Positions 21,031 through 55,574 of a stretch of 64,000 nt of DNA are shown piece after piece; the stretch's first letter is position 1; every line of letters begins with the position of its first letter. The stretch is from Macrostomum lignano (lineage: Eukaryota): assembly GCA_002269645.1 (NCBI GenBank), contig NIVC01002342.1, positions 7,559 through 71,558 on the forward strand, given 5' to 3'. Below the pieces are notes generated by a model. That model did not search any database and had not been told where the DNA came from. It worked only from the letters and a program-made list of their open reading frames with translations. A program made the translations under genes and the position numbers.

Positions 21031-21087
21031 TTTAGAGAGTAGAGTTTTTTTAATTAAAGCTTTTTAACGTCAAGACAAAAAAAATTA

Positions 21088-25490: not shown

Positions 25491-26011
25491 CAAATCCGCT
25501 CCAGACAGTCACATCCGCCACAGACAGGCGCAGATCAACCCCAGACAGGCACATCCGCCACAGACTGTCACAGATCCGCCACAGACAGTCACACATCCGC
25601 CCCAGACAGTCAGATCCGCTCCAGACAGTCAGATCCGCCACAGACAGTCAGATCCGCCACAGACAGTCAGATCCGCTCCAGACAGTCACATCCGCTACAG
25701 ACAGTCACATCCGCCCCAGACAGTCAGATCCGCCCCAGACAGTCAGATCCGACACAGACAGGCACAGATCCGCTCCAGGCAGTCACATCCGCTACAGACA
25801 GTCACATCCGCTACAGACAGTCAGATCCGCCACAGACAGGCGCAGATCAACCCCAGACAGGCACAGATCCGCTCCAGACATTCACATCCGCCACAGACAG
25901 ATCCGCCACAGACAGTCACATCCGCCACAGACAGTCAGATCCGCGACAGACATTCACATCCGCCACAGACAGTCGGATCCGCCACAGACAGGCACAGATC
26001 CACCCCAGACA
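25491..26011. repeat. 19-bp satellite B, array 2
   Basis: Same unit as 17696. Confidence 0.95.
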
Positions 26012-30361: not shown

Positions 30362-31266
30362 GGCTACATGTATAGGATTATTTCTATCCAGGGATGCTTG
30401 CTATTTAGGGATTCTTGCTATGTGCAGGATGCTTGCTATCTGGGTGGATGCTTTCTAGGAGTATTAGGGGATGCTTGCTACTGGGGGATGCTTGCTGTCT
30501 TGGGAATATTTTCTATTTAGGGTAATGACTAAAATTCATGAGAGCTAGCCTAGAGGTAAACAGACTAAACTGCTAAATGCAGGGACGATGGTTCGAATTT
30601 TTAGAGAGTAGAGTTTTTTTAATTAAAGCTTTTTAACGTCAAGACAAAAAAAATTATGGAAGCGTCATGTAAACAATCATAGAAGCGTCATGTAAACAAT
30701 CATAGAAGCGTCATGCAAGCAATCATAGAAGCGTAATGTTAAAATCATACAAGCGTCATGTAAACAATCATACAAGCGTCATGTAAACAATCATAGAAGC
30801 GTCATGTAAAAATCATAGAAGCGTCATGTAAAAATCATAGAAGCGTCATGAAAAAATCATAGAAGCGTCATGTAAAAATCATAGAAGCGTCATGTAAACA
30901 ATCATACAAGCGTCATGTAAACAATCATACAAGCGTCATGTAAACAATCATACAAGCGTCATGTAAACAATCATACAAGCGTCATGTAAACAATCATAGA
31001 AGCGTCATGTAAACAATCATAGACACTGGTACTGACTTGCCTAAGAAATTGATTATGTCATAACTGCTTCGTGTGACTTTTTACTCTACCTGACTTGGTG
31101 TGAGTGTTGAATTATATAAGTGGTACAAATTCACTGATAACTTCGATGAGAGCTAGCCTAGAGCTGAGCAGACCAGACTGCTAATGCAGCGACCTGGGTT
31201 CGAATCTAAGTAGTAGTGTAAAATTTTTTATTAAAAGCTTTTATTAAAGGACTAAATAAAAACACT

Positions 31267-32875
31267 TAGATTACTGCACTCGATAAGCTAAGGATTATTG
31301 CTCTTGGCAAACCAAGGATTACTGCACTCGATAAGCCAAGGATTGTTGCTATTAATAAACCAAGGATTACTGCACTCGATAAGCCAAGGATTATTGCTAT
31401 TAATAAACCAAGGATTACTGCACTCAATAAACCAAGGACTATTGCTATTAATAAACCAAGGATTACTGCACTCAATAAACCAAGGACTATTGCTCTTGGC
31501 AAACCAAGGATTACTGCACTCGATAAGCCAAGGATTGTTGCTATTAATAAACCAAGGATTACTGCACTCGATAAGCCATGGATTATTGCTATTAATAAAC
31601 CAAGGATTACTGCACTCAATAAACCAAGGACTATTGCTATTAATAAACCAAGGATTACTGCACTCAATAAACCAAGGACTATTGCTCTTGGCAAACCAAG
31701 GATTACTGCACTCGATAAGCCATGGATTATTGCTATTAATAAACCAAGGATTACTGCACTCGATAAGCCAAGGATTATTGCTATTAATAAACCAAGGATT
31801 ACTGCACTCGATAAGCCAAGGATTATTGTAAACCAAGGATTACTGCACTCGATAAGCCAAGGATTATTGCTATTAATAAACCAAGGATTATGCACTTGGC
31901 AAACCAAGGATTACTGCACTCGATAAGCCAAGGATTATTGTAAACCAAGGATTACTGCACTCGATAAGCCAAGGATTATTGCTATTAATAAACCAAGGAT
32001 TACTGCACTCGATAAGCCAAGGATTATTGCTATTAATAAACCAAGGATTACTGCACTCGATAAGCCAAGGATTATTGTAAACCAAGGATTACTGCACTCG
32101 ATAAGCCAAGGATTATAGCTATTAATAAACCAAGGATTATGCACTTGGCAAACCAAGGATTACTGCACTCGATAAGCCAAGGATTATTGCTATTAATAAA
32201 CCAAGGATTACTGCACTCAATAAACCAAGGACTATTGCTATTAATAAACCAAGGATTACTGCACTCAATAAACCAAGGACTATTGCTATTAATAAACCAA
32301 GGATTACTGCACTCAATAAACCAAGGACTGTTGCTATTAATAAACCAAGGATTACTGCACTCAATAAACCAAGGACTATTGCTATTAATAAACCAAGGAT
32401 TACTGCACTCAATAAACCAAGGACTATTGCTCTTGGCAAACCAAGGATTACTGCACTCGATAAGCCAAGGATTGTTGCTATTAATAAACCAAGGATTACT
32501 GCACTCGATAAGCCAAGGATTATTGCTATTAATAAACCAAGGATTACTGCACTCAATAAACCAAGGACTATTGCTATTAATAAACCAAGGATTACTGCAC
32601 TCAATAAACCAAGGACTATTGCTATTAATAAACCAAGGATTACTGCACTCAATAAACCAAGGACTATTGCTCTTGGCAAACCAAGGATTACTGCACTTGA
32701 TTTATCAAGGATTATTGCTATTAATAAACCAAGGATTACTGCACTCGATAAGCCAAGGATTATTGCTATTAATAAACCAAGGATTACTGCACTCGATAAG
32801 CCATGGATTATTGCTATTAATAAACCAAGGATTACTGCACTCGATAGCCAAGGATTACTGCGCTTGATAAGCTTG
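31267..32875. repeat. 24/48-bp satellite, array 5
   Basis: Same units as 19576. Confidence 0.97.
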
Positions 32876-34577
32876 GCTACATGTATAGGATTATTTCTAT
32901 CCAGGGATGCTTGCTATTTAGGGATTCTTGCTATGTGCAGGATGCTTGCTATCTGGGTGGATGCTTGCTAGGAGTATTAGGGGATGCTTGCTACTGGGGG
33001 GATGCTTGCTGTCTTGGGAATATTTTCTATTTAGGGTAATGACTAAAATTCATGAGAGCTAGCCTAGAGGTAAACAGACTAAACTGCTAAATGCAGGGAC
33101 GATGGTTCGAATTTTTAGAGAGTAGAGTTTTTTTTAATTAAAGCTTTTTAACGTCAAGACAAAAAAAATTATGGAAGCGTCATGTAAACAATCATAGAAG
33201 CGTCATGTAAACAATCATAGAAGCGTCATGCAAGCAATCATAGAAGCGTAATGTTAAAATCATACAAGCGTCATGTAAACAATCATACAAGCGTCATGTA
33301 AACAATCATAGAAGCGTCATGTAAAAATCATAGAAGCGTCATGTAAAAATCATAGAAGCGTCATGAAAAAATCATAGAAGCGTCATGTAAAAATCATAGA
33401 AGCGTCATGTAAACAATCATACAAGCGTCATGTAAACAATCATACAAGCGTCATGTAAACAATCATACAAGCGTCATGTAAACAATCATACAAGCGTCAT
33501 GTAAACAATCATACAAGCGTCATGTAAACAATCATAGAAGCGTCATGTAAACAATCATAAAAGCGTCATGTAAACAAGCATAGAAGCGTCATGTTAACAT
33601 AGAAGCGTCATGAAAAAATCATAGAAGCCTCATATAAAAACTAATGAAAGTGTCATTTAAAAAATTAAGAAGCATCATGGAAGAATAAAAGAAGCGTAAC
33701 ATAAAAATCAAAAGAAGCGTCATGTCAGACATGAAAGAAGTGTCATATAAAAATTAAATGAAGCTATAGTGCTGTGCTGGGAGAATTACTGAGACGTCAA
33801 GGCTCACAGAGAATAACTGAGATTACAGGGGGGTTTCTGAGATGTTAAAGCAAAAGTCAGAAGCTACTTCAAAGTACATGTACTTTACTTAAGTTTTTTT
33901 ATTGTATTCTTTGTTGGCTTGCCACGGTGGGGGGGCGCTGATAGAAGAAGAGTCATGTAAAAATAAAAGGAGCACTATGTATACATAAAATAAAAGTCAT
34001 GTCAAAGTTAAAAGATTCATTTGGGAATTGCTACGATGTCAAAGCTTGGAGGGAATCGTTATAGTGCTGTGATTCTTAAAGAAGGAATCACTTAAATGCC
34101 AAGGCTTAGGGAAGAAGAATTGCTGTGATTTCAAGGCTTTAGGTTGGGTTAAAGTTAGGTTTAGGTCAGGTTTGGGTTGAGGGTTAGATTTTAGCGGGTT
34201 TCAAGGTTAACAGGGGATTTTTTAGATTTCAAGGTTTATGGGGGCATCGCTGACATGTCAAGGCTTACGAGGGGAATCTATCTATCTATCTATCTATAGC
34301 TGAGATGTCAAGGCTCACGGGGAATAAATGAGATGTCAAGGCTAATGTCAGAAGCTACATGTAGTTTATTGGAAAAAAGTTATTACATTATTTGTTGGCT
34401 CCTCACGGGAGGGATCGCTGATAGAAAAAGCGTAATGTAAAAAATAAAAGAAGCTTCATGTCGAAGTTAAGAGATTCATTTGGGAATCTTTACGATGTCG
34501 AGGCTTGCAGGGAATCGCTATAATGCTGTAGTAGTGCTATAATGACTCTTAGAGAGAATTACTGAAATTTCAATGCT

Positions 34578-38566: not shown

Positions 38567-41500
38567 TCACTGAATGTTGCAGACTTTGCTCCTGTTCTTC
38601 TTCAGTGACACCTGGCTGGCAGTCAGCGCCTCCGCCTCCGCCTTCTCGTCTGCCACTGCTCGTCCACCGCTGCTCCGCTGGCGCGGCTGCGGCGTCTTCA
38701 TTGTTGGCGCACCGCCGGTTTCGTTGGCCGCGGCCGCCGCCTCGAGCTGGCCGATGGCTACAGAAGTTCTGTGCCGCTGCAGCCTCCGCTTCGCTTCATC
38801 ACCGGTGTCTTTTTTGCTTGCCACGTGCTTCTTTGATGCTATGTACTTTTCCTGCTCCTCCAGGTACTTCATGTACTTTTTAACCGACTCGTTATACTGC
38901 GTATTGCCGAGCTTCAAAGCGTCCAGCTCCTTGTGCAGCAGATCGCGCAGGAGGGCTTCGCCGGCGGAGAAGAGATTCTCCTGCGCGCCGGAGCCCGACG
39001 CCTCGTCGTCTGGCAACACCGTCACCCGGCCGTTGCCGGCTCTCTGGTGCTCCAGGCACAGCCACAGCAGCTTGCCGCTGCCCAGCGCACACTTGGACAG
39101 CCCGGAGTGGCGCTGCTCGCCCTCTGGAACATGCACACGGAAGACCGGATGAGACTCAGACAAAATTTCGAGCTGAGCGGCATTACAGGAGATCAATCAA
39201 ACCTATGATCTATCAGTCAAATAAAAGTTCGAACATGGTCTGTATTTATGGATTGCTATTGTGGCCTGCTAAGGAAGAGTAGGAACTCTCTGAAACCGAA
39301 TGCCCTGGGCTATTGCGCGTTCGAATCTCAGTTCTGGACACAGAACTAGAAGCTGAAATTTATGTTCAGTGACGAAAACCGTTGACTGTCATCGAGTTCT
39401 ATATTCATGGTTGCGCATGAACTTGCGACCAAGTAACGCATAGAAATGCATTCACGGAGCACTGAGTTTAAAAAAACCAGCAAACGGACTTTGAGCAATC
39501 GACACCCGCCCCACTCACTGGTGGCATCCGTGTACAGCTGCTGCACCGTTCGGTAGGCGTCGATGAACGACTTCGGCGACACCGCAGCCTCCACACGGAC
39601 TGCCTGCAGGAACTCCTCGGCTTGGATTCCCTCGAGGCAGTTCAACCGAATGCCGCTGGCCTGCAGCAGCGAGCAGATCCTTAGCAGGTACACGGAGGCG
39701 GCGGACAGCAGGTTTTCCCGGCCCGTCTTGCTGGTGGTCGCGAGGCTCACGGCCGGTCCGTGGGCGTGCCAGCCCTGTAGTGTTTCAAGGGATACATTGC
39801 GTTTTGGAAACCAAACCTATCATGCATTTCGACACTATAATCAATCTATTCTTAATGAGTGGAGACATTGAGAAGCATAAGTGTGAAGCGCGATGATGTT
39901 AAAACATTCCAAGCCATGGATCGGAAGTTGTCCCGGTGTCCCTCAAAGCCCTGCTAAGAACCGCTTGCGCTTCAATCTGCCATACCATGCAACTCACCCG
40001 CTGATTCTCGCAAAACACTCTGATCAGCACCTGTGGATTTGCGGTGGAAGGAAAAGCTGTATAAAATTCAATCAATGGATCACACTGCACATTACTGCAA
40101 TTTTGGTAGGGTTCGTAGGTAAACCAACCAATTCTTCCAGCTTGCCGCCGTCTGAATCCTTGCTCCGGCTCTCGTCACTGAAGTCGGTGACGTCGCTGAA
40201 GTCCGGCACAAGCAGCCGCGGCAGGTCGCTGTGGCTGAACTGCTTGAGAAACCGGCGCTGCGCAAGCTCGGCCTCCTCTCGAAACAGGCCGGGCTGGCTT
40301 GGCAACGGCATAGCAACGGTGGTCTTTCGTTTCATCAACGGCACGTTTGCCGATCTTTTTTCGGCCTCTTTGGCCAGCAGACTTTTGATTCCGGCAACCA
40401 GTCTTTTAAATTCCAAAGCCGGAACATCCTTGCGAAAGTCGAACTCCTCGTAGCCCAGGCTGAGCATGCCCAGCTCTTGGGTCTTAAAGGCCTGCGTCTG
40501 GCCCACCACGACAGTCACAATCGGCTTGCGCAGGTTCTTTGCCGCGAAGCGAAACTCCATCATGCAGTTGGCGCTGCGCTGGTACTCGTCGCTGACAAAA
40601 GCCAGGACTAGCGGGCACCGGCCGAGGCCCGAGCTGATGTCCTCGAATAGGCTGCGCTGCAAGTGAAACCGGACAGGGAGAGCTTCGTGTCTATCTGCTC
40701 CATTTTTACTGTTCTAACAAATTCCCACAACATGCCTTTTAAAGACTGACACGATAACTACTAACAGCCCTATAATCTAAGGATTGATATCAGAGATACA
40801 ATGAGCTTTAATGAATGTGTGAATGCTCTTCTTCACGTTACACGTCGAGATCTTGAGATGTTTACGAGCATTGGAGATAAAATACCATCACTTCAAAGCT
40901 TTACTGACACATTCATCGATTTATAGTGTAATTAATATCTGCGAAACCTACGGTTCCAGTGTCCTTGACGTCGAGCCAGCATCGAATCCCCTCTGCTTCC
41001 AATCTCTCCCTGAGCCGACGCGGGTCACTGTCCTCGCAGCCAAGAGCTCCGTTTCGGGTTCCCTTCGCCACGGCGTCGTGAGAATTTGCCCAGCAGTAGG
41101 AAACAAAGACGTCCTTGTCGCGAGAGTCATCGTCACTGGGTTTTTGATTGGATGTTTCAACCGCAGCCGAGACGTCCTTGATGACCTCTGCGAGCTGCCC
41201 TTCGTAGACTGACTTTTTGGCTTCCGTCAGATCAATATACTTGTCTGTACCGACGAGGAAGGCGAGCTCGGTGCAGTCCCGCCACGACTTGTCCGCCCCA
41301 ACGCTGAGGTAGACGAGCTTCTTGCGCAGGTTGTTCTTGGCGCTGAACAGCGAGTTCAGGCAGGCCTTGTCTGAGCCGAAGGACTTTGTGAGGAACACGA
41401 GCACAGCGCTACAGTCGCTCATGTGCAGCTGCTTGTCCTCCTGCTGCTCGGGGTACGGCGGGTAGCTGAAAAGTGAACAGCATCTGGGATAAGCAAGGTG

Positions 41501-44500
41501 AACAGAAGCGAGGTGCACCAGAGTATTCCGCAATGGCTTACCAGCTGAGCCCTTCTGCCTCCAGCTTCTTGGCCACAGCCTCAGGGCAAGTTGGTCCTCT
41601 GTCCTTGCCGTCTTTCGGAAAATCATCCGCAAGAAACAGCAGACACACATCTCTGCTCATCTCCAGTCGAGCTCTGCGAAGCCGCAGCAGACTCTGTTCA
41701 AGCTGATGGTCGAACTCCGTCAGACTTTCTGGGCGGATGCTTGCGAGCAGCTGGCTCAGGTTTAGGATGTGAAACTCGAACGGGCACTGCAGGAATGACA
41801 CCTGACGGCTGCTGGCCTTGCGAATCATGGCAACTCGGATGACGCTGCGCTCACTGTCACCCGATGAGGAGTTCAGGCACTCGGGACAGGGCAGAATCTC
41901 TTCATAGTGGACGCCGTGGAACGTCTCCTTGATGAGACTGTCGAACACGTCGTTAATCATGAAGAGTACGTTCTCGGGCCTCGGTCCGAACACAGTCGCG
42001 ATCAGGCGCTGTCTCTCGTCCATGGTGATGACGGCGATGTGGGCGTCCTTTCGGAGCAGCGAGCCGCGCTTCCAGATGGTGTTGCTGTCGGTGAACTCGA
42101 ACAGCCGGACCTGAGCCCGGTTGAACAGCCCGGCTGGTAGGTAGTCGAACTGGTAGATGAACCTCGCCAGCGTGTTGCCCTCGCCGTCCGCCTCTTGCGG
42201 GAACGAGTACTGCGCGAAGGTGTTCGAATTAAATCGCTAATTCACAATGGATCTCGGTTTTCCTGCATGAACTATGGGCAATGGCTTCAGTCTAGTTGTT
42301 TGAGCAAAGCACCTGCACCAGCCGACGTAGCGGAAGCGCCGTGGCCAAGGGCGTACTGTGACACTGACAGACTGTTTTGTGACAGACTTGTAGGCCCAGA
42401 GTCTCAGCCCCAGACCGCAGTTGCCTGCCCCTCCTACCTGTTTCTTGAGCGCGTGTGCGCAAGAACTCACTAGTTTTTGTTCAAGATAGATAGATGGATA
42501 GAGACACAAAACACAAGCTCGTCAGAATCAAAAGTACCTCCGGCACGTCCTCTGGAAGCAAGCAGGGCACGATGTTGCAGTCCTCCTTCATCGCGTACGT
42601 TAAGTCGAAGGCCTCTGTAAGCTTCAGCAGCCACTCGTGAAGTGCTGGATCGAACTTGCTCCAGATCGCTGGAATGTCGGATCTTTTCAGCTGGCCGTTC
42701 TGCAGTTTGATGGGTTGTTAAAGTTCGGCTCAGGTTCATGCCATGCTGATAATGTACAAGCTACTGTGACGGAGAAGCTCACCTGAATGGGCGAGTTCTT
42801 CACGCTGACAACGCACGCCATGACATCCACAATCCACTTCGGGTTGATGACCACTTTGTGTCTGAGGTAGTCCGTGTCGAAGTACTGCACCGAGCCGATG
42901 TCGTTCAGAAAGCTGACCGCTTGCCTCACGTGCTTGTCCTCGTAGAGGCCCTGCGACTGGGCCAGGTCGGCCACTTCCTGCCAGTCCAGAATTTTCACGT
43001 GGTCCCGGGTTCGTTTCTCGATCAGGCGGTCTTCAAAGTCCAGGAAGATCCGCGGCAGCCGCTCGCTCATGTACGGCTGCTGGAGGGCGACCTGAACCAG
43101 CTGCTTGCGGAGGTCGCCGATGCCCATGCCTGCGGTGGTGGGGAATGCGGTGTTCTGCTTAGGAGGGGAAGCCACCTGGGCAGAAAGACTTGCTGTAACT
43201 GCTTACCGCTGTGCGATGAAATGATGTGAAATCCGCAGATCTGAGGATATCGCGATTTGAACGTCTCCATGGGAATCTTGTCCGGTTTCTCCACCTGAAA
43301 CAGTATATTTGTAACCTCCATTGTAGGCACAGTAAGGTGTTAGGTGACTTAAAGCACTTCTCACCTGATCAGCATGGGTTCCCACCACCAGAATCGGAGC
43401 GTTCGGTGCGTGGCTGGCGATGGAGCTGAGCCAGAAGTTCAGGCCGGCGTGCTCGTAGCCAGTCCTCACTGTGTACAGCAGCAGGTAGACAGCCCTGTGT
43501 GTGAGGAAGAACTGGTGGGTGTTGTAGTACACCCGCTGTCCAGCAAAGTCCCACGTGCTGAAGTGCAGCGGCGGACTGCCGTCGCCGATGTCGATTTGCC
43601 AGTCGCCAATGTCGATGCCGTCGGTGATCTCCTCGGCACCGATGACGCTGGTGGTCCCGGTGGGACTGCGCAGGGCGCGCAGCAAGCTGGTCTTCCCAAC
43701 TCCGCCTGGAAGCGGTAAGAAGCTGATTAACTATGCACACTGTTCTGACCGGGTACCACATGCTCCGGCCAGGAGAGACCCGGAAACTTACCCAGTCCGA
43801 CAAACATCAGCTTTGTTCTCTTGCACTCCACTTGGTCGGAAGCGAGAAATTTGAGGTAGCTGAGCATAGCGCTCGAGCCCCTCTTGGCAACCTCCACAGG
43901 CGGAGTCTGCAGAGACGGGCACCTGGACACGTCCACGTGACTCAGTTGTGGCAGCTCAGACAGACAGGGCGACAGGGACTTCAGCCTCGGATTGTGATCG
44001 AGGACCAGCCTTTGCAGCTTTTTCAAGCTTTTTATCTTGTCAGGAACTTGATGGATTGCCTGCAGTGAGATGTGACGCTTGTGCACTCCAATGGCCACTG
44101 ATAAAGTTTATCTAAAAAAAAACAGTTTCAAAGGAGTATTTAAGAAGCCACATATCCCGCTTACCTGATGCGAAAGTCGCAGCTCCCTGAGGTTGGTCAG
44201 CTCGAACAGGCAGGGCGGGATCCCGCCGGTGTCATCATCGTCCACGCTCTCCAGCCCCATGCGCGGCACGTCAGTCAGCATGTAGTGAAGGCCGCGGCAG
44301 TCCGCGATCCGTTTGGCTTGCTCCTCGGTGATGAGCAGGCTGAAGAACTGCTGCTCAGGCGGCACGGGCTCCAGGCCCGCCAGTGTAACGCCAGGGTTGC
44401 GCAGGTAAGTCGCATCCAAAGGCGATGCTGTTCCCGCGCCGCTGTCGTGCTCATCCATCTGGTCCGCCACTCTGTCAGGCCAAGCAATCCCGTCGATGAC

Positions 44501-47500
44501 GAGCTCCTGCAGCGAGCGCAGGTTGGAGAACTCCTTCGGCAGAGTGCGGATCGGCAGCTGCAGGAGGTGCAGCATGGTTAGTCTGTCTAGCTGTCCGATG
44601 GATGCTGGAAGGGCAGTGATGAGGCACCTGTCAAGCGTCAGAGACTCGAGCTTGGTGCTGCAGGTGTTTGGCAGCTGTGAGACCTTCGCGATGCTGATGG
44701 TGAGGCTCTGCAGATTAGGAGCGTTGCAGTCAATGGACAGCAGGTCGGACTGGGTTATCGTGAGGCTTCGCAGGCGCTGCATCGGCCAGCTTTTGTCCAG
44801 ACTCTGCATCTTCTCCATCCTGTGCAGATGGAGAGTCTCTAATCCGGTGAGGCCCGTCAGGCAGGAGGCGCTGCTGATGAGGCGCGAGCTGATGAGGGCC
44901 GAGCGGACGCAGCTGCCGAAAGTGGCCAGAGTGGCCGCCACAGCCGCTTCTCCCTCGCCTGCAGCTGCGGAGCCGACCAGCTCGTCAATGAGGGTCGGGC
45001 TGCCGGCAGCCAGCTGGTGAGCCCTGCACACGGGCTGCAGGTCCTGGCCCTGCTGCTGCTGCGCCTGCAGAACCAGCGGCCCGCCAGGGGGCTGAGTGAA
45101 CTCCGCAGTCAGGCGCTTCTTGAGGTCTTCGAGTCCATCGGGCTGCTCAGCGGCTGATGCGGCGAAGAGGCTGCGCCAGTGCGAGAGGGCGGCTCCGAGC
45201 AACAGCAGCCGCTTCACGACAGCCTCCGCAACTGAGCGGCAATGGCCGGGGCCGGTGAGCAGCTCGTGGCATGGCAGCATCAGCTGAGGGTGGGGGTGGG
45301 GTGGCAGCATCAGCTGAGGGTGGGGGTGGGGTGGCAGCATCAGCTGAGGATGGGTGGGGTGGCAGCATCAGCTGATGGTGGGTGGAGCGGCAGCATCAGC
45401 TGAGGATGGGTGGGGTGGCAGCATCAGCTGATGGTGGGTGGAGCGGCAGCATCAGCTGATGGTGGGTGGGGTGGCAGCATCAGCTGAGGATGGGTGGGGT
45501 GGCAGCATCAGCTGAGGATGGGTGGGGTGGCAGCATCAGCTGAGGATGGGTGGGGTGGCAGCATCAGCTGAGGATGGGTGGGGTGGCAGCATCAGCTGAT
45601 GGTGGGTGGAGCGGCAGCATCAGCTGATGGTGGGTGGGGTGGCAGCATCAGCTGAGGATGGGTGGGGTGGCAGCATCAGCTGAGGATGGGTGGGGTGGCA
45701 GCATCAGCTGATGGTGGGTGGAGCGGCAGCATCAGCTGAGGATGGGTGGGGTGGCAGCATCAGCTGAGGATGGGTGGGGTGGCAGCATCAGCTGATGGTG
45801 GGTGGGGTGGCAGCATCAGCTGAGGATGGGTGGGGTGGCAGCATCAGCTGATGGTGGGTGGGGTGGCAGCATCAGCTGAGGATGGGTGGGGTGGCAGCAT
45901 CAGCTGATGGTGGGTGGGGTGGCAGCATCAGCTGATGGTGGGTGGAGCGGCAGCATCAGCTGGTATTCAGCCCCTTACCCTGTGCTGCATCAAAGCCCTG
46001 ACGGCAGCCTGTGCTGTCAGGTGGCAGTCCAGAGCTGATGGCAGTGGGTGCTTCACTCCGGCAGAGTCCACCAGGTGCACGTCCGTCACGGAACCTGCGT
46101 GTTGGTTAAGCAGGGAGTCAATGATTTAGTGAAAATGGTCCCAGTGAGGAACTCAGACGGAATCCACTGAGCACGGTGTTTACTAACCGCTGTTGCACAG
46201 CAGGTGCGCTTTCAGTTTGCCAGAATCTGCTACATCCAGGATGCTGGGCTGGCACAACAGGCGGCCCTCTTCGCTGGTGAGTTCGGGCAGGAAAACCCAC
46301 AGGAAGCCGTGGCCAACGCCGGCCTTCTTCGCCAGAGACGCCAGCACACTGCGGCCGAAGCCGGCGGGCCCTCGGAAGCCGACGCAGCGGCAGGGCTGGC
46401 CGTAGAGGATGGAGTCGTCCGTCAGGTCGCTGGTCTGATTCCAGCGGGGCAGGACGTTCGGGCTGGGGAAATTGGGTATCGGTAGCGCCGGATCGCTGAT
46501 CGTTGAGGCTGAAGTGGTGCGTGAGTTAAGCAGGCCGTTAGCGCAGCTGTCCACCTGCAGCGGAGTATTTCTAATGCTATTTCTAATGCTATTTCTAATG
46601 CTATTTCTAATGCTATTTCTAATGCTATTTCTAATGCTATTTCTAATGCTATTTCTAATGCTATTTCTAATGCTATTTCTAATGCTATTTCTAATGCTAT
46701 TTCTAATGCTATTTCTAGTGCTATTTCTAATGCTATTTCTAATGCTATTTCTAATGCTACGCGCTTACAGCTGAAGTTCGCTCTGTCTAGCCGGTCGGGA
46801 GCTCTGAAGCTGCCAGCACTGATGTCAACCGTCACTGCAGCCAGTGCGGCGTCTGCCGGTTGCAGAGTAACCGACTTGGAGTCGGCCTTGACGACCCTGC
46901 CGAGTTCGCCGCCGGGTTTTCTGGACTTCCCGGCTTCGAGTCGCAGCCAGTCGCCAGGGCTGAGCTCTCTCGAGTAGTTCACGGCCTGGAGTTGGAGCGG
47001 TCTGTGAGTTTCACTGCGCCGAGGAAAACTGAAGATATTCATTAAAACCCACCGGGAAATTCGAAGCGCTGACGCAGACGGCGGCACCCGCCGAAGCGTT
47101 GAAAACCCAGCCGTAGTTTCTGCGCGGCACGAGCACCTTTCGGACGGTGACTCCATTCTCCAGCACCTCCAACAGGTCGCACGAGCCGCCCAGCTTCCTT
47201 CTGTTCTCCTCCCTGTCCTGAAGAGCCACGAGAGGTGCCGAGTTGTGCCGCGACATCTCCGGCTGCAGATCGAAGGTCAGCCGCTTCTCCTGGTGCCCCG
47301 CCGACTTGTTGTCCAGCGAGATCTCCAGACTGCACTCTTTGCGCAAGAATTCCGAAAACTCCAGCGACTGAGCGTCGGGACTCGAATCCGGGTCTTTGCT
47401 GCTCTCTTTTGGGTACAAAATGAGCACGTTGAGAATCACGATTCTCTCCTGATCTTTGGGCGACAATGCGAAGTATGCCGTCCGCTTCTGGTCCTGCTCG

Positions 47501-50500
47501 CCGCCGGACAGTGCGGCACCCGGGTCCACCGTTGCAGAATTGCAGATAACGTGACGGGATGAAGTCACCTGGAATTCCGTGAGCTCGTACAGATTACTGC
47601 GGAAGGTGAACAGTGCCTCAATAATTGTTTTCATAACGGTTTCTCACCTTCAACTCCGTCTGCCCGGGGGCCAGCAGCTGCAGAGCGACTACAGCTGAGA
47701 AGCTGGGCTGCATCTCGGTTTTCTCCTTCAGGCAGAGCAGGCGGCTGTCTTCGGGGAAAATCTTCGCAACAGCGGTTGTGTCGGCAGGGTCATCCAGGAA
47801 GTCTTCCGTCACACCGACCGGGAGCTGCTCAGCGTAGGTCGCTGGCAGCCAGGGAATTCGGTTGGTCAGCCGCACAGCCTCCCTGGGCGACTGCATAGTA
47901 ACGCAGGGGAACAGCCCCGTGGGCGGGACGTCCACCGGCTCGCTGACGTGGCAGTCCTCGAACGAGCCGCTGCCCCGCTGGTCCACCGAGAACAGGACCC
48001 GCGCCCGGCTGGGGCCCACGAAACGCAGCTGGCAGCGCACGTGGCAGCCCGGGGCCGCTTCGGTGCCGGAGAACTGGAACTTCGGGTCCGGCTCTGCCGC
48101 TCCGCCAGCTGTGAGCAGTCTGCGGTTTGTGTCAAGATGGCGTGGATATTTTGCATTTGCAATGCATTGGCTTTGAGTCCGGCTCAGCTTCAACTGAGTT
48201 GTCTTAGTCTAGCACCATCAATCAGGTGTCTCTCACCTGCCGTCCACGCCGCTGTAGCCAACAGAGCCAGGCAGCGTGCCGGGCTGGGCCATCACGGGAA
48301 AGTCGGCCGGCACGACTCCAATGGAAATATTTCCTTTAACGCCCTTGTTCTCAATGCCTGCAATGGAGTCACTTACAGTTAAGCGACGTACGCCAGTGGT
48401 TCTCGTTTCGATTGAGTTTTGCAGTCTGGCAACTTACAAATCTCAAACGAACTGCTGCTCCTGGTCAGGCGTCTCTCCCCGATCAGGGTGGCCACGGGAA
48501 CGAATATGTTGGAGGCGGCCAGCCCAGCAGATTCCTGCAGCGTGTTGAACCAGTAGAACGCGACGCCCGTCTCCTGCCACACCGAGCAGAAGGACCTCAG
48601 AGCGAAGCTGAACCTGCGGTCCACGCCGAGTGCGCCGTCCATCACATCGTCAACGGGCTGGAAGGCCAACCAGTGGGGATCCCAATCACCATTTATCGGC
48701 AAGAGCTAAAACAGCAAGCCGCGCTCACATTAACAGCGGACAGCCGGAAGGTGACAGTAATCGGCTCCTCCAGCAGCACCTGGCTTGTGGAGAAAACCGC
48801 ATCTGCGGGCACGGTGCAGCAGACGCATATTCAGGCTTCGAAATATCATTATAAAAAAGTTTTCATTTTCTCACCTGTCTGGCTTTCGGATAGCTTTGGA
48901 TAAACCTCCAAGTACCTCGGCGTATGCTTTCTAAAATAGCAGAAGCGAGCAGAGGTCATCGAGTCAAGTTCTGCTTCATCTTCCTAAACCCCAAAAAGTT
49001 TTCGTATTCTGATGACTCTCTGATCAGTTTTGATTCGTGACTGATTGTTGCCAAGAAGCCATTCTGAAGCACCAACGCTTCGAAAAACTTTTCAATGAGA
49101 CTTTTCTAACTATACAGCCCAAAAAGATTGGTCGTCAACTCACTCCCAAAGCAGGACACTGAGCTGCGGCTGCTGGGAACCACTGGGGCTGATGCTGAAG
49201 CTGACCTCAGGCGCCAGCACCGACTGCAGCGGGGCGCTGGGGCAGAGCCGCACGCACCGGCTGCTGTCCGCGATGTCGCCATCGTCGATGTAGCCCGGCA
49301 GGACACGGCTGGGACGCACGTCGCTGCCAACCGCCCAGAGCCGCGCGGCGCAGCGGCCGCAGACGCCGCAGGAGTCACAGCTGGCGCCGCCGAGGGCGCC
49401 GCAGAGGCAGCGGCCGGGAGTGCCGGAGTCGATCCGGTTGAAGGCGCAGTCGGAGCCGCCGACCGAGCAGCTGCCGCACAGCGAGCAGACCGACTGCTGC
49501 GGCTCGCCGTCCAGCTGCTGCGGCTCCCAGCAGTGCTCGCTGTGGACGGAGCAGTTCTCTGCTCAGGCGGGGAACGGCGGTTGCGCTGACCAGTTTGTTA
49601 CCGGGTAGTTCGAGAGGGTGGCTTCTTGGGCGACAGGAGACCCGCAGCGCAGGAAAGTCAGGGAAAATCAATGATAGTGCGCTTTTGTACTAATCCGTGC
49701 GCGTGCTCAGGGACCAGGGAAGCGACCATAACTGCTGGCCTTCTCTCTGCCTGTGGGTCAACTGTTGCCTCAGAACTAGCTCAGGGCATGCACACGGATG
49801 CGCATCTTACGTGAATCGGACAAGCCCATAAAAAATTTTGATTCATGAGCCTCAAAGTAAATGAAGACAGGCGTTCACGCGTGTGTAAGCATGCAATCAT
49901 CCATGGACTCAGAATTTCCACTGCATGCAAACAACCATGGACTCAGAATTCCTTGAAATCCTCCCAAAACCCCGGCGCAGTCCCGCTGCCTACCCGGTTC
50001 GCCATTCGATGGCGCAGTCTCCGCGATGACGCCGTGCCTCATCATGAGGCAGTCAGCGCAGTCCGTGAACAGGTGCAGTGCGGACCACAGCATCCGCTGA
50101 GTGGCCTCAGCCGCTCCACCAGAGCTTGCTCCAGCAGGCTGGTAGGCAGTCAGCCTCAGCAGCCGCTCCTCATCGTCAAAGTGCACCGCCACCTCCGCTC
50201 CCCACAGACACCTGACAAAGCCGCGGGCAGACAGGCAGCAGAGGGAGCCGAGATGCGACGTCAGCGAGCTGAGGGCCGGCAGGATTCGGTCCGCACTCAG
50301 GTTGATGCCGCGGTACCAGCGGTGGACGGCCGCGAGACCCAGGCCTTCGGCGTCCTTGGCGGACTTAACGGGCCAGTCCAGCTGCCTGGCGTTGGCACAG
50401 AACATGTTGGTGTAGAACAGCTTGGCATCGGCAGGCGACTCTCGAATTGGAAGCACCTCTAGCAGGGCTCCGGAGTCCTTGAATATGCTGATGAGGTGGT

Positions 50501-53500
50501 CCATCTGCAATGATGATTAAGCAGGTGGTTGAGCATGTGATTGAGCTAATTGATTGAGCAAGTGGTGAGCAAGTGATTGAGCAGGTGATTAAGCAGGTGG
50601 TTGAGCATGTGATTGAGCAGGTGATTGAGCAGGTGATTGAGCAGGTGATTAAGCAGGTGGTTGAGCATGTGATTGAGCAAGTGGTGAGCAAGTGGTGAGC
50701 AAGTGATTGAGCAAGTGATTGAGCAGGTGATTGAGCAGGTGATTGAGCAGGTGATTGAGCTAATTGATTGAGCAAGTGGTTGAGCCAGTGATTGAGCAAG
50801 TTATTGAGCAGGTGATTGAGCAAGTGATTGAGCAAGTGATTGAGCAGGTGATTGAGCAGGTGATTGAGCAGGTGATTGAGCAGGTGATTGAGCAGGTGAT
50901 TGAGCAAGTGATGAGCAAGTGATTGAGCAAGTGATTGAGCAGGTGATTGAGCAGGTGATTGAGCAGGTGATTGAGCAAGTGGTTCAGCCAGCGATTGAGC
51001 AGCTGATTGAGCTAATTATTTGAGCAAGTGATTGAGCTAATTATTTGAGCAAGTGATTGAGCTAATTATTTGAGCAAGTGATTGAGCAAGTGATTGAGCA
51101 GGTGATTGAGCAAGTGATTGAGCAAGTTGTGAGCAAGTGATTGAGATAATTATTTGAGCAAGTGATTGAGCAAGTGGTTGAGCAAGTGATTGGGCTAGTT
51201 ATTTGAGTAAGTAATTGAGCAGCTGATTGAGCTAGTTATTTGAGCTGGTGACTGAGTAAGTGGTTGAGTAGATGATCTGCTCACCTCCTGCACGGACAAG
51301 CCGGCCTGCTGCAGCGACTTGTCCAGCTCCAGCTGGCTCCACACTCCGGCCCCGGGGCTCAGTCCGGGCAGCAGCGGCCCGGCAACCAGGGGCGGCTCAA
51401 ATGGCAGCGACTCCAGCAGGGTGAAAAACCATGGCGGGTCGGTTACCACGATGCGGAGGCGCTTCAGATAGATGATGATGCCCTGAAAAATTGAATATGC
51501 GCTTATTGTTCGTGTAGTGCCGAGAATTTTTGCATCACAAGCTGAGGCGACTCACCCTCTGGTGCAGCCAGTCCAAATCGTGAGTCAAGAAGGTCCGGTC
51601 GATCTCCGTGTTGCCCGCCAGCTGGTCCACGGAAACCAGCCGGCCGCCAGCCTCCTTGCTCGCCAACTTTCGGCACGCAGCGACGACGACTTCTGTGGTC
51701 GCCGCGTGCGCTGAGGCCGCAGGCGCCAGCGCGGAGAAGGCGGCAACCGCAGTCTCTATGAGAGCCTGGCGCAGGTCTCGAAGTCCGCCCTCGCCCCCTC
51801 CACCGTCGGCTTCGGCGTCGAAGATGTCCAGCTCTTGGTCGAAGCGAGTCCGCAGGAACCGCTGCACTCGTTCCGCTGCCACCAGCGACTCCGCTGCGCG
51901 CCGCTCCGCTTCGAAGCCCTGCGTCACCGAAGCCGACTCTGCTGCAGCCAGAGATGCTGCTTCCAGCGCTGCCGCGTTGGCCTTCATGGCATCTTGGACG
52001 GCCGAGCGAAGCCGGTCAGCGCCTCCTCGCTGATGGTCGATTTTGCGGCAAAGGATGCGAAATCGCGTCCGATGCGCACCCTCGTCGCTGACTTCCACGT
52101 CTCCTGTCATCTTCAGCTGGTCCAGGTGCTTCTTAATGTCCTCGTTGGTCAGCGCCTTGTCGATCTGGCAGAAGCCCATCTTCTCGGACACGTCCGCGGC
52201 GGCCCAGGAGACGAAGCCGTGCGTCAACTCGGACACATCGCCGAACAGAGCGCTCGTTCGGACTTGAAAGTCTTGAAGCAAGTCTTGGTTAACGAAAATG
52301 CTGACGTGGCAGGCGTCCTTGCTGTCGATCGGGTCCGAGATTTCCACGGCGAATTGGAACTCTCCGGCGGCTGCGATGGGGATGCTCTGGGTCTTCGTCC
52401 TGCCGCCATCGGGCCTGGCGTAGCTGCAGGTCAGCGTGCTGCGGATGGGGAAAAGCAACTGACTGCAAGCCTGCATAATTTGCAACAAAGTTAATTCGCA
52501 CCGGCTGCTTACTATTGATTCGGATTTTTGCTGCTGAAGAGCAGCAGAACTCCCGCTGACTGCTCGAGCTGCTCCTGCAGCTGCGCCAGCTGAGGATTGT
52601 CAAAGAATTTTGCCGAAATTTTCCCAATCCCAGCGCTGAAGGAAGAGCGGCTCGCGCTCTGCACTGAGAAGCCGCACAGGGGAGTCTGCTTCAGCGGCTG
52701 CCGGCTCAGAAAGGCGCCGCCTCGGTTTAGCAGGGGTAGCCTGGAATAGGAAGGCTTGGGATGGTCAAGTCACTGCACCCACTGACACCCAGCCCTGCTC
52801 CACCTACACCCAGCCCTGCTCCACTTACACCCAGCCCTGCTCCACTTACACCCAGCCCTGCTCCACTTACACCCAGCCCTGCTCCACTTACACCCAGCCC
52901 TGCTCCACTTACACCCAGCCCTGCTCCACTTACACCCAGCCCTGCTCCACTTACACCCAGCCCTGCTCCACTTACACCCAGCCCTGCTCCACTTACACCC
53001 AGCCCTGCTCCACTTACACCCAGCCCTGCTCCACTTACACCCAGCCTGCTCCACTTACACCCAGCCCTGCTCCACTTACACCCAGCCCTGCTCCACTTAC
53101 ACCCAGCCTGCTCCACTTACACCCAGCCCTGCTCCACTTACACCCAGCCCTGCTCCACTTACAGCCAGCCTGCTCCACTTACACCCAGCCCTGCTCCACT
53201 CCCAGCCCTGCTCCATTCACCAGCATCTCCACTTACACAGCTGCTCCACACACCGCCTGGACTTACACCCAGCTGCTCCACTTTTCTTTGTAATTAAGTT
53301 CAATTTCGAGGCGGTCTTCAGCTGCACTGGCGCCTCTCGACTGACAACAGGAATGGCGGCGGCGGGCTGCTGCAGGACCAGGCGCGGCTCGGTCCTCTTA
53401 CCTGAGCACTGGGTTCTCCTATGAGTAGTGGATGTGGGATTTCAGTTGCAATCTTTCTCAGTGCTTATCAGTTGGCTCAAGAACTCACGTACTCAAGAAC

Positions 53501-55382
53501 TCACCCGAGACACGAAGTTGGTCAGACAGGCGGTCACGTGGGCGACGGCGCTGTCAAAATCGTTTTCCACGGCGATCACAACCTGATCCGGCTGGCCGGT
53601 GAAGAACTGCGTGTTGTAGGCCTGCGCGCGGGGTTGCGAAGGGGCTGTGAAATTTCATGCACTTTTGATGCTGCAGACAGACAGCAGAACTGATGCTGAA
53701 ATCCCGCTGATCTGGCCTATTTCGGGCTCTCCAAGGGGACAAACAAAGAAGCGGGGGATTTAAATGAGCTTGCAACCTTTCAAATGGAGACGGTGACAGA
53801 GTAAGCTCACGTGAAATCCCAATTCTTTCATGTTTATCCGCTCTGGGATTCATATGTTGGGCATCCTTGTTAAAATAATGAAACGTTTTTTTTCAAGCCA
53901 TTTTTTGGAGTTGATAAAACGCAGGATTACGCTCACCGACAGGCACAGCTCAACCGCAGCCACTTTGAGCAGCCCGCCGGCCTCCATAAATTGCGAGTCC
54001 GCTGCCGTTCCCCGCACAGCCGGCCTGAGGCGGCACTCCTTCACGGTGCGCAGCGGGCTGTACTGCAGGTCCGGCGGCGTCAGGAACAGCAGGCTGGACA
54101 CTGACAGAGCGGCGGACAGATCCGGCTGCAGCTCGGCCGGGCTGTCCGGAATGCCGGACAGCAGATCGCTGCGAACTGTCGATTTGGAGCCGAATGTGTT
54201 GAGCAGCAGATGGACGGAGTTAGCAGTGAGTCCGGGGCACTGGCGGATGTCCGCATCCACCGTCAGGGTCTGCAACTCAAAGCAATTGAAGGCAGCTGGT
54301 TTCTTTGCCATTCCGTGACTGATGCCTGCACCCATCGCTCTCACCTTAGCCACTGCTCACTCACTGCTGCCTGCACCCATCGCTCTCACCTTAGCCACTG
54401 CTCACTGACTGATGCCTGCACCCATCGCTCTCACCTTAGCCACTGCTCACTGACTGATGCCTGCACCCATCGCTCTCACCTTAGCCACTGCTCACTGACT
54501 GATGCCTGCACCCATCGCTCTCACCTTAGCCTCTGCTCACTGACTGATGCCTGCACCCATCGCTCTCACCTTAGCCACTACTCACTGACTGATGCCTGCA
54601 CCCATCGCTCTCACCTTAGCCCGATTCGCATCTCCGCCCTTGAGAGCCTCGCAGAGCCAGCGAATTCCCTCGTCTGTGATGTGACTTTCGCCCCTGAACG
54701 ATAGGCGAAAGCGATCGGCTGCAGCCTTCTCGGCCTTCATAGCCTGCAATGAATTGGGGTTACAGCAACAGCTAAGAATTGTTTGCTGAATTTTGCATAA
54801 GTTTTGCTTGTCAAATTTAAAATATTTATGAGAATCTGCCTACCAGCGCCGCAGAAAGGTGCTTGAGGGTGAGGTCGGTCAGCAGGCTGGACCAAACCGG
54901 CATTATTTCGCTCCTCGGAGCGGCTCCGTCCGAGCTGAAAAACACCGTGGAGTCTTCGACCGCAATGTTTTCTAACTTTCTCTGCAAAGTTTAAGTGTTT
55001 CAAGAGAGAAATTTAACAAATATTTTGTACATTTGGGGAACTCCAAGAAAATTCTGGATCGTAGCGTTCTCGGGGCGATCATCCATCTTACCGCCAGCAA
55101 GCCGTCTCTCAGTCTGAACCGTTCGAACACGTCAGCCACGACCTCCGACTTGGCGGCCTTTCGCAGCGGCTCAACCGACCCGGTTGGCGATTCAAACCTG
55201 GGCGAACGCTGCGGCGAAGCCTCCACTGAACGCAGCTCCTGCTCATTCAAAATGTCGTCATCATCGCTCCCAAACAGGCCGCCATATTTATCCTCAACTC
55301 CGAAAGATGACATGCTGTAGGCTGGGCTCCCCGCTCTGTCGCTTGGCAATCGTTTTAATGGCCTGCGGGGTTGTGATACTTT

Positions 55383-55437
<55 letters not shown>

Positions 55438-55574
55438 AGTGGCGGTGGCGGCTGCTGCTTCTGTTGCTGCTGAATCTCAGGCAGCGGTGGAGGCTTCTGT
55501 AGCAGCTGCGGCGGAGCCTGCTTTGATACCTGACTCCTGGCAGGCGCCTTTTTGGAAAGGAAATTTTTATCCAT
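38567..55574 (-). CDS. Giant Roco-family protein (about 32 exons, about 3,500 aa): polyQ, LRR-like, degenerate Roc/COR, Cys-rich, SPRY, LRR, Roc, COR, TIR, TIR, CaaX-like end
   Basis: Phase-consistent exons: 55092-55574, 54844-54981, 54615-54743, 53937-54269, 53505-53621, (uncertain exon about 53260-53410), 52513-52740, 51556-52462, 51285-51482, 49994-50504, 49144-49558, 48875-48930, 48729-48802, 48438-48705, 48237-48357, 47648-48119, 47053-47568, 46769-46985, 46188-46508, 45979-46094, 44165-45283, 43792-44059, 43365-43705, 43207-43294, 42783-43129, 42538-42699, 41542-42209, 40952-41465, about 40130-40656, (about 39998-40030, uncertain), about 39485-39775, 38567-39172. Confidence 0.85.
40300..41660 (-). 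other. Tandem TIR-like domains of the Roco gene
   Basis: TIR1: DVCLLF..KKLEAEGLSC..CSAVLVFLTKSF..KACLNSL. TIR2: DVFVSYCW..RLEAEGIRCWLD..LFEDI..VLAFVSDEYQRSANCMMEFRFA. Confidence 0.88.
41700..43129 (-). other. COR domain of the Roco gene
   Basis: RLPRIFLDFE..AVSFLNDIGSVQYF..VVINPKWIV..LTEAFDL..VPCLLP..YQFDYLPAGLFNR..IWKRG..CPEC. Confidence 0.9.
43207..43830 (-). other. Intact Roc GTPase domain of the Roco gene
   Basis: G1 FVGLG|GVGKTS, G2 ITDGIDI, G3 WDFAGQ, YYNTHQFFL, G4 VGTHAD, G5 IISS. Confidence 0.93.
43792..44830 (-). other. Leucine-rich repeats upstream of Roc
   Basis: LTGLETLHL, LESLTLDRCLITALPASIGQLDRLTML, LTNLRELRLSHQ, LKKLQRLVLDHNPRLKSLS. Confidence 0.92.
45284..45965. repeat. 28-30-bp intronic minisatellite containing the splice acceptor
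   Basis: Minus-strand unit ...CCTCAG|CTGATGCTGCC duplicates the acceptor of exon 44165-45283. Confidence 0.93.
46566..46759. repeat. 12-bp intronic minisatellite (ATTTCTAATGCT)n
   Basis: About 16 copies fill intron 46509-46768. Confidence 0.95.
47800..48705 (-). other. SPRY (B30.2-like) domain
   Basis: FEI|CIENKGVKGNISIGVVPADFPVMAQPGTLPGSVGYSGVDG ... VLFSVD ... GLFPCVTMQSPREAVRL. Confidence 0.8.
50516..51270. repeat. 12-bp intronic minisatellite (GTGATTGAGCAR)n
   Basis: Fills intron 50505-51284. Confidence 0.95.
52781..53280. repeat. 21-bp intronic minisatellite (CACCCAGCCCTGCTCCACTTA)n
   Basis: Minus-strand unit carries GGGT|GTAAGT. Confidence 0.93.
54316..54620. repeat. 45-bp intronic minisatellite containing the splice donor, 7 copies
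   Basis: GCTAAG|GTGAGAG recurs every 45 bp (plus-strand TCACCTTAGC at 54341, 54386, 54431, 54476, 54521, 54566, 54611). Confidence 0.95.
55382..55438 (-). repeat. (CAG)n encoding a polyQ tract of about 17 residues in Roco exon 1
   Basis: Uninterrupted GCT run on the plus strand. Confidence 0.9.

Follow-up and report, generated by a model that had tools for sequence, protein, structure and literature searches.

The minus strand of contig NIVC01002342.1 of Macrostomum lignano encodes a Roc GTPase with COR and TIR domains and, upstream of these, a long N-terminal extension. What is this extension related to? A first-pass annotation of the window (the whole stretch of 64,000 nucleotides analyzed here) had proposed that it holds a second, GTPase-dead Roc-COR module, produced by internal duplication and pairing in cis with the active one as a single-chain pseudo-dimer. 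If true, such a pseudo-dimer would be a natural single-chain model of Roc-COR dimerisation regulating an effector, and would bear on LRRK2 biology.

Here we compare the extension with the Roc and COR families by profile, motif and structure searches on spliced models. With moderate confidence, we read the locus as one ROCO-TIR gene whose lineage-restricted N-terminal extension carries a COR-A-like winged helix and no second Roc-COR.

Exons and domains of the gene

The gene is plausibly a single, very large one on the minus strand, whose 29 or more exons span about 55574-38567 and encode no fewer than 3,200 aa (Table 1). Between 54743 and 49994, 7-9 GT-AG exons give one uninterrupted frame of 780 aa, which grows to 859 aa when one further upstream exon is included. 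Position 54743 is the first base of its exon (acceptor ttcattgcag) and 49994 the last base of its exon (donor gtaggc); reading of the splice sites confirmed the peptides and exon borders that had been quoted for this interval. The codon usage of these exons resembles that of the remainder of the gene, with log-odds of 0.08-0.41 per codon in frame, while the two remaining frames give -0.3 to -0.8.

Table 1. Exons and domains along the minus strand, in window positions
Feature	Position	Strand	Basis and remarks
Putative first coding exon, ATG at 55574, polyQ, low complexity	55092..55574	-	Open frame; donor GGCG/gtaagatg; 3' part aligns with transcript-derived P0003
Exon ...VWSSLLTDLTLKHLSAAL	54844..54981	-	tblastn match of P0003; also in DP gene model
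Exon B, ...HITDEGIRWLCEALKGGDANRAK; contains ITDEGIRWLCEAL; upper limit of region studied	54615..54743	-	Splice sites read; P0003 aligns
Exon C, TLTVDADIRQCPGLT...AAVELCLS	53937..54269	-	Splice sites read; 60% identity to P0003
Exon D, AYNTQFFTGQPDQVVIAVENDFDSAVAHVTACLTNFVSR; contains AYNTQFFTGQPDQVVIAV	53505..53621	-	Sequence read; paralogue alignment
Possible 17-nt micro-exon (ENPVL-R)	53402..53418	-	Uncertain part of model
Exon E1, LPLLNRGGAFLS...FSSKNPNQ; beta-rich domain begins	52513..52740	-	Conserved in P0001, P0002, P0003
Exon E2: beta-rich domain, long helices, first winged-helix part (...LDWLHQR); contains ILCRKID	51556..52462	-	Splice sites read; 97-98% identity to M. lignano P0001 and P0002; domain and helices from low-confidence AF2 secondary structure
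COR-A-like winged-helix segment, aa 708-807, GLRDLRQAL...VVTDPPWFFTLL	51414..51786	-	hhalign, family HMM
Exon F, GIIIYLKRLRIVVTDPPWFF...GVWSQLELDKSLQQAGLSVQE	51285..51482	-	Sequence read
Exon G, MDHLISIFKDSGALLEVLP...LWSALHLFTD...SNGEP	49994..50504	-	Splice sites read
Cys-rich exon without ATG	49144..49558	-	Phase-compatible with exon G donor; no Pfam match
SPRY-like domain, exons 48357-48237 and 48119-47648	47648..48357	-	Pfam SPRY below cut-off: E 0.0013, 19.2 bits (cut-off 26.3)
LRR region, exons 45283-44165 and 44059-43792	43792..45283	-	Pfam LRR_8 46.5 bits, LRR_14 46 bits
Genuine Roc GTPase, exons 43705-43365 and 43294-43207	43207..43705	-	Pfam Roc 69.5 bits (cut-off 27)
Genuine COR-A, exons 43129-42783 and 42699-42538	42538..43129	-	Pfam COR-A 94.4 bits (cut-off 35.3)
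Genuine COR-B; TIR 1 starts at exon 3' end	41542..42209	-	Pfam COR-B 94.5 bits (cut-off 27)
Two TIR domains: rest of TIR 1 ~41465-41219; TIR 2 ~41018-40952 and 40656-40429	40429..41465	-	Pfam TIR_2; junctions read

The C-terminal third is canonical ROCO-TIR, in the order LRR-Roc-COR-A-COR-B-TIR-TIR (Pfam, spliced model). Its G motifs GLGGVGKT, DFAG and THAD are intact, the COR-A match spans the full profile (positions 1-143 of 143), and the TIR domains lie C-terminal to COR within the same reading frame, the second on the adjacent exon. TIR_2 scored 27.9 and 25.9 bits on single exons; the spliced model raised this to 59.6 bits, the cut-off being 28. The nearest relatives of this module are invertebrate Roc-COR(-TIR) proteins with 44-52% identity, from Candidula, Brachionus, Plectus, Haliotis and Capitella; these database relatives are partial (<880 aa), and the comparison covers their Roc-COR. 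The gene probably encodes an innate-immunity-type signalling NTPase.

In the extension, the COR-like motif is cut by an intron (LDWLHQR/GIIIYLKRLRIVVTDPPWFF straddles the 51556/51482 junction), which is part of why Pfam on raw open segments missed everything upstream, and spliced models were therefore built. The DP gene model was hand-corrected from P0001 and P0002 and by junction reading for the 907-nt exon E2, the polyQ exon and both TIR exons; 3' of TIR 2 it is uncertain. Homologue searches and AF2 predictions were run on the paralogues P0001 and P0126 as stand-ins for the spliced window protein. The two AF2 models reached mean pLDDT values of only 31.3 and 40.3, unusable for fold assignment, because the alignments are too shallow.

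Order along the extension can be proposed in outline. It would possibly begin with an LRR-like cap and continue with a short beta-beta-alpha piece, which is conserved, and a linker. Next would come a beta-rich domain and long helices, then a winged helix of about 100 aa resembling Roc-alpha5 and the first half of COR-A, perhaps a second, weaker one, and a further alpha/beta region. Exon C, joined to exon B at the junction K/TLTVDADIRQCPGLT, is possibly RNI-type LRR-like by its sequence, and no Pfam LRR matches exons B and C even at E <= 10. Exon D is the best-conserved piece of a Macrostomum-specific family in paralogue comparison; after it the window has an in-frame TAA, at a place where the paralogues continue through a longer linker exon. 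The roughly 350 aa before the winged helix appear, in low-confidence AF2 secondary structure, as the beta-rich domain and then the long helices.

A COR-A-like winged helix in the extension

One signal in the extension is reproducible. About 100 residues (GLRDLRQAL...LDWLHQR/GIIIYLKRLRIVVTDPPWFF) align, profile against profile, to the last Roc helix (alpha5) and the first winged helix of COR-A, with hhalign scores of 41.6-44.4 (P 1.3e-4 to 3.8e-6), whereas 60 block shuffles reached at most 25.9 and the reversed query 17.2. An independent alignment pair reproduces the match (score 36.0, P 4.7e-4), and an HMM of the first half of COR-A gives the segment 7.2 bits versus a maximum of 2.2 across 300 shuffles. 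The segment is co-linear with the first ~90 positions of the N-terminal half of Pfam COR-A (PF16095) and the preceding Roc helix, and shares with that family the patterns L-x-(W/F)-L-H-x-x-G and V-V-x-(D/N)-P-x-W. The topology assigned by DSSP to the low-confidence AF2 model is H-beta-H-H-beta-beta-H.

By sequence, the resemblance to COR-A is nonetheless weak. Pfam COR-A reaches E 0.22 and 11.9 bits on the segment, far below the cut-off of 35.3, and the HH probability varies with the slice between 32 and 87%. The second half of COR-A (positions 89-143) finds no match in the extension, hhalign remaining inside the shuffle ranges. Of the COR signature that had been proposed here, the first winged helix thus stands above shuffles over ~100 aa, and the remainder of COR-A has no signal.

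Could the likeness be a generic one, convergent or common to wHTH domains at large, with no evolutionary link between the extension and COR? We consider this unlikely, though it is the likeliest of the alternatives. Pfam lists just two families for the segment, and Rrf2, a bacterial wHTH regulator, ranks ahead of COR-A (E 0.082 versus 0.22); pairwise BLASTP finds no significant similarity to the COR-A of the gene itself; and Foldseek of the low-confidence second model against PDB returned nothing at E <= 0.001, its sub-significant matches being assorted generic winged helices exclusively, with no Roco or LRRK2. The hhalign alignment, however, outreaches the wHTH core on both sides: the preceding helix is aligned (GLRDLRQAL versus GIGDLRKQL), as is the V-V-x-D/N-P-x-W stretch beyond the wing, and the whole is co-linear across ~95 columns. 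Moreover, in the genuine module of this gene the matched template range (157-262) falls within one exon (43129-42783, residues 156-271).

A COR-A-type resemblance of ~100 aa upstream of the genuine Roc-COR makes a partial, exon-sized duplication plausible, and the extension may have received a copy of a piece comprising the last Roc helix and the first COR-A winged helix. This is the part of the proposed internal duplication that finds support; G domain and COR-B give no signal. The extension copy is interrupted by an intron (51555-51483) at the helix-wing junction, whereas the genuine COR-A copy has no intron at that position. If such a piece was copied, it would represent exon shuffling within ROCO genes.

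One transcript or two genes

A single mRNA across the extension and the ROCO-TIR part is plausible from the exon structure: an in-frame GT-AG path runs through all exons, and P0003, a contig that derives from RNA of a related species and has no introns, links exons A to E1. A DP search of this kind does often find an in-frame path joining neighbouring genes, and the locus might instead hold two, an N-terminal gene from 55574 to ~49878 that ends by read-through of the exon G donor, and a ROCO-TIR gene that begins downstream, its start possibly supplied by trans-splicing. Read-through of the donor at 49994 does meet a stop after 37 codons (~49878), and the paralogue fragment P0125 stops exactly at the exon G border. 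No matches came from a homologue search with the middle region, so that neither a database protein nor a transcript linking it to exon G was found.

Several features of the junction nevertheless make two genes rather improbable. The exon at 49558-49144 has no ATG and starts directly after a stop codon, so that it needs an upstream donor, and exon G is phase-compatible. Codon bias stays the same on both sides of the junction, exons outside the training set included; inter-exon gaps are just 70-440 nt; and neither AATAAA nor ATTAAA occurs between 50000 and 48650, whereas both are present after the final stop.

Roc, COR-B and the relation to known Roco proteins

The search for the remainder of a second module gave a different outcome from that for COR-A. 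Upstream, neither Pfam nor an unfiltered search with the family HMM (hmmsearch --max) nor hhalign found a Roc G domain, the hhalign scores staying within shuffles. Pfam found no family at E <= 0.1 in the N-terminal 1020 aa, and for the 780-aa N-terminal model it listed no Roc, Ras or COR even at E <= 10. The motifs GxxxxGK[ST] and [NT]KxD are absent from 54743-49994; the missing P-loop had been correctly noted before, and NKxD is missing as well. Profile searches thus recover a resemblance to the first half of COR-A in the extension and none to Roc or COR-B. Exon G (50504-49994), which had been called COR-B-like, scores within shuffle ranges with all profiles, as does COR-B in the whole N-terminal segment by local and global hhalign, and hmmsearch --max and Pfam find nothing. 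It does hold a second, weaker winged-helix-like start (hhalign P 0.03-0.04). Sensitivity for Roc and COR-B is limited here by a query profile of very low depth (Neff ~1.3-1.5).

Two short peptides had been read as echoes of Roc, AYNTQFF and, as a G4-like motif, ILCRKID. Both fail profile tests and neither lies above chance, an illustration of how short motif echoes can mislead. The T and first F of AYNTQFF vary among paralogues, and hhalign of exon D with Roc gives 12.2, inside the shuffle range and not Roc-like.

Wider searches give the same picture. Neither BLASTP of the N-terminal part against its own Roc-COR (best E = 4.8) nor an internal repeat test against the middle region revealed similarity, and PDB sequence and profile searches with the N-terminal part returned no Roco and no LRRK2. 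Among 1.84 billion (1.84e9) representative proteins the N-terminal part has only 5 relatives; all are Macrostomum-like with the same Macrostomum-type architecture. P0127 (E 8.8e-6), a repetitive TPR/STAND-like protein in which a short stretch matched five times, was judged spurious.

That the extension is a complete but strongly eroded pseudo-GTPase Roc-COR, packing in cis on the active module and gating the TIRs, is in our view very improbable. It would explain why the COR-A-like winged helix sits at the right relative position, with an alignment that starts in the would-be last Roc helix, and pLDDT values this low leave room for a strongly eroded G-domain or COR-B fold. By eye, moreover, the ~200 aa after the winged helix are co-linear with the second half of COR-A and COR-B (AEVAVHFDDEERLLRLTAYQP versus AHIAVITMDERQRLIATVFGP, the pair that gave the BLASTP E of 4.8; another co-linear pair gave E 8.3). 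However, these regions score inside shuffle ranges and Roc signal is absent by every method; the stretch expected to be the G domain is the beta-rich domain plus ~120 aa of helices in low-confidence AF2, and AYNTQFF lies ~350 aa ahead of the winged helix, separated from it by a disordered linker and a further domain. COR-B is the dimerising part of these proteins, so that the element which a single-chain pseudo-dimer requires lacks support upstream, and the pseudo-dimer itself is not supported.

For the preferred reading, one ROCO-TIR gene with a single Roc-COR, the working would follow established Roco proteins: GTP would be bound and hydrolysed in the single Roc domain, and COR-B-mediated dimerisation of two chains would control the assembly or action of the C-terminal TIR domains. 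The extension, with its LRR-like, beta-rich and SPRY-like parts, might serve as the ligand- or partner-binding region. The extra winged helix would most simply be a relic of a partial exon-sized duplication, now a packing or docking domain, and by analogy with COR-A it could make contact with the Roc domain. In a milder version of the very improbable pairing in cis, the duplicated COR-A-type winged helix could act as a decoy for the Roc/COR-A interface.

ROCO-TIR proteins have been described in Aplysia californica as 'ROCO-domain TLR/TIRDC' genes (PMC9334734). Judged by its sequence, the present gene is a further invertebrate ROCO-TIR protein with a lineage-specific, fast-evolving extension in front. 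The order LRR, Roc-COR-A-COR-B, TIR is common to it and to the proteins of A. californica, Candidula unifasciata, Plectus sambesii, Capitella teleta and Batillaria attramentaria. Its N-terminal ~1,800 aa hold no above-cut-off Pfam family, the SPRY-like exons and the COR-A-like winged helix included, whereas the Aplysia genes instead carry MBT, EF-hand or Death domains (PMC9334734).

In its order of Roc, N-COR and C-COR the downstream module agrees with Chlorobium tepidum Roco and human LRRK2 and, like their RocCOR, it has complete G1, G3 and G4 motifs, so that the same GTP-dependent monomer/dimer cycle would be expected from motifs and family. C-COR is the main dimer interface of RocCOR (PMC6337361), whereas the match of the upstream segment is confined to the Roc-alpha5/N-COR winged-helix part and includes no C-COR. 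This gene has TIR domains as its output and no kinase domain.

The ROCO-TIR gene and its exon model

Our best reading of the sequence is a ROCO-TIR protein with one active Roc-COR and a lineage-specific N-terminal extension that carries a COR-A-like winged helix. The gene region lies in a GC-rich stretch of ~18 kb, on whose minus strand many short open segments are separated by minisatellite-filled gaps; the minus-strand gene is eukaryotic and intron-rich. A dynamic-programming search yielded an in-frame GT-AG path from ATG to stop, which after manual correction comprises 29 exons encoding 3,194 aa, counted up to the second TIR domain. In Pfam searches the spliced model matched Roc (69.5 bits), COR-A (94.4 bits, full length), COR-B (94.5 bits), TIR_2 (59.6 bits) and several LRR families, and its Roc domain contains GLGGVGKT, DFAG and THAD. 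The closest relatives of this module are invertebrate Roc-COR(-TIR) proteins (44-52% identity); ROCO-TIR genes are on record in Aplysia (PMC9334734). The two TIR domains stand in tandem. Where the motif WCxxEL is found in many TIR domains, the second carries the stretch C-M-M-E-F and the first A-C-L-N-S-L.

The seven exons of the N-terminal part encode a 780-aa frame without interruption, or 859 aa when one upstream exon is added, and their in-frame codon log-odds resembles that of the confirmed domain exons, far above the other two frames. All peptides quoted in the first-pass annotation were found in the window with correct exon borders: ttcattgcag precedes 54743, gtaggc comes after 49994, and the boundaries between K and TLTVDADIR and between LDWLHQR and GIIIYLKRL are genuine GT-AG junctions. 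Compared with P0001 and P0002, two fragmentary Macrostomum lignano proteins, the N-terminal exons are 90-98% identical; identity is 69% with P0003, an ORF without introns that comes from a related species, on an RNA-derived Logan contig 1,383 nt long. These identities place the window in M. lignano or a very close relative. With P0001 as query, an exhaustive HMMER search of 1.84 billion representatives returned five proteins, four of them Macrostomum-type paralogues of identical layout; the fifth was judged spurious.

Public M. lignano models of this family in UniRef (P0001, P0002 and P0004) are fragments that partly read through intronic repeats, and their clusters bear unrelated names, among them 'SWIB domain-containing', 'Helicase ATP-binding domain-containing' and 'SHR-BD domain-containing'. 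In the window, the linker exon that follows exon D reads ENPVLR then TAA, whereas P0001 and P0002 read ENPVLRKRT…; its remainder sits in a different frame, and a GT at the TAA permits a 17-nt micro-exon spliced in frame to 52740. The difference could reflect a frameshift, alternative splicing or an error in the assembly. Five minisatellite arrays fill introns of the gene (table).

Features of the window
Feature	Position	Strand	Remark
GC-rich gene region	38.5-55.6 kb		
ROCO-TIR gene	55574-38567	minus	ATG to stop
N-terminal part	54743-49994	minus	exons B-G
COR-A-like winged helix	51786-51556 + 51482-51414	minus	model aa 708-807
Exon with corresponding range, genuine module	43129-42783	minus	Roc-COR residues 156-271
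Tandem TIR domains	40429-41652	minus	
Linker exon	53290-53420	minus	
Cys-rich exon	49144-49558	minus	
SPRY-like domain	47648-48357	minus	
Minisatellite array	54316-54621		period 45 nt; ROCO gene intron
Minisatellite array	52779-53238		period 21 nt; ROCO gene intron
Minisatellite array	50514-51268		period 12 nt; ROCO gene intron
Minisatellite array	46566-46759		period 12 nt; ROCO gene intron
Minisatellite array	45272-45962		period 28 nt; overlaps modelled acceptor of big LRR exon
ENPP-type ORFs	7014-8512	minus	
MYND ORF	13247-13693	plus	
AT-rich satellite region	~19500-33000		GC about 0.36

A COR-A-like winged helix in the N-terminal part

The N-terminal part had been proposed to hold a second, GTPase-dead Roc-COR module. 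That observation is partly confirmed and its interpretation partly supported: the part does lack a P-loop and NKxD in a motif search, and it contains a COR-A-like piece, but a second Roc-COR is not supported. When hhalign compared an alignment of the N-terminal family with an 88-sequence Roc-COR alignment, a single clear match emerged: residues 547-646 are co-linear with Roc-COR residues 158-259, which take in the final helix of Roc and COR-A's first winged-helix. The score was 41.6-44.4 (P 1.3e-4 for the whole sequence, 3.8e-6 for sub-slices), against a maximum of 25.9 in 60 block shuffles and 17.2 for the reversed query, and an independent alignment pair repeated the match (score 36.0, P 4.7e-4). 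An HMM of the first half of COR-A scored 7.2 bits on the N-terminal part, with a shuffle maximum of 2.2. Searched against 24,736 Pfam families, the isolated segment listed only two: Rrf2, a generic winged-helix family (E 0.082), and COR-A (E 0.22, 11.9 bits, far under cut-off). A weaker winged-helix-like match lies downstream of the first (P 0.03-0.04).

Two AlphaFold runs on paralogues gave mean pLDDT of 31.3 and 40.3, too low for fold assignment; in the second, the segment follows the winged-helix order H-beta-H-H-beta-beta-H at pLDDT of about 47-59. Foldseek with this low-confidence model found no significant match in PDB, and its non-significant list consisted of assorted winged-helix proteins and no Roco. 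The matched range of the genuine module falls inside a single exon, and the winged helix probably arose by duplication or shuffling that was partial and of exon size.

In BLASTP the N-terminal part matched the Roc-COR of its own gene at E 4.8 at best, phmmer and family-profile searches of all PDB sequences returned neither Roco nor LRRK2, and the 780-aa model had no Pfam match to Roc or COR at E ≤ 10. Scores stayed inside the shuffle range for the AYNTQFF exon region and the 360 aa preceding the winged helix against Roc, for the region past it against the second half of COR-A, and, in both local and global mode, for exon G against COR-B; hmmsearch with filters off found nothing for Roc, the second half of COR-A or COR-B in those regions. 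AYNTQFF, taken earlier for a Roc echo, varies in paralogues at its T and first F (AYNLQYF, AYNIQYF), and in the low-confidence AlphaFold model a linker, a beta-rich domain and ~120 aa of helices separate its exon from the winged helix. The COR-B-like character attributed to exon G was likewise not borne out. COR dimerises mainly via its C-terminal half, RocCOR without that half being monomeric (PMC6337361); a single-chain pseudo-dimer, as first suggested, would need both a second COR-B and a second G domain, and neither finds support. By family membership, the TIR domains would assemble or act under the control of the Roc GTPase cycle and of COR-B dimerisation between chains, and the N-terminal extension may bind ligands or partners.

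Continuity of the gene and neighbouring features

That the N-terminal part is a gene separate from the downstream ROCO-TIR gene appears unlikely. In favour of two genes, a homologue search found no protein or transcript bridging exon G and the downstream exons, the relative P0125 stops at the exon-G border, and read-through of the exon-G donor would meet a stop after 37 codons. Against two genes, the in-frame path runs through all exons with uniform codon bias, the exon following G has no ATG and begins just past a stop codon, and AATAAA/ATTAAA are absent from 50000-48650 and both occur past the final stop.

In the spliced model, neither the N-terminal 1,020 aa nor the following 818 aa match a Pfam family at E ≤ 0.1. 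The Cys-rich exon following G (CSLCGSC…CDSCGVCGRC) has coding-type codon bias and no Pfam match, and its sequence may represent an undescribed zinc-binding module. A SPRY-like domain falls under the Pfam cut-off (E 0.0013, 19.2 bits); its exons read …GSVGYSGVDGR…FSVDQRG…LFPCVTM….

Elsewhere in the window, an ENPP-type type I phosphodiesterase/nucleotide pyrophosphatase is encoded by two neighbouring ORFs that resemble exons (Pfam Phosphodiest, 259.6 and 45.4 bits, profile positions 1-224 and 224-342), and an ORF with a MYND zinc finger (zf-MYND, 39.5 bits) adjoins GC-rich repeat ORFs at 12.4-16.4 kb. Satellite blocks in the AT-rich region give long repeat ORFs (e.g. NPWFINSN…, ILGLLSAV…); their spacing of about 7.3 kb (ORFs at 19575 and 26857; 21720, 28979 and 31266) suggests a higher-order repeat.
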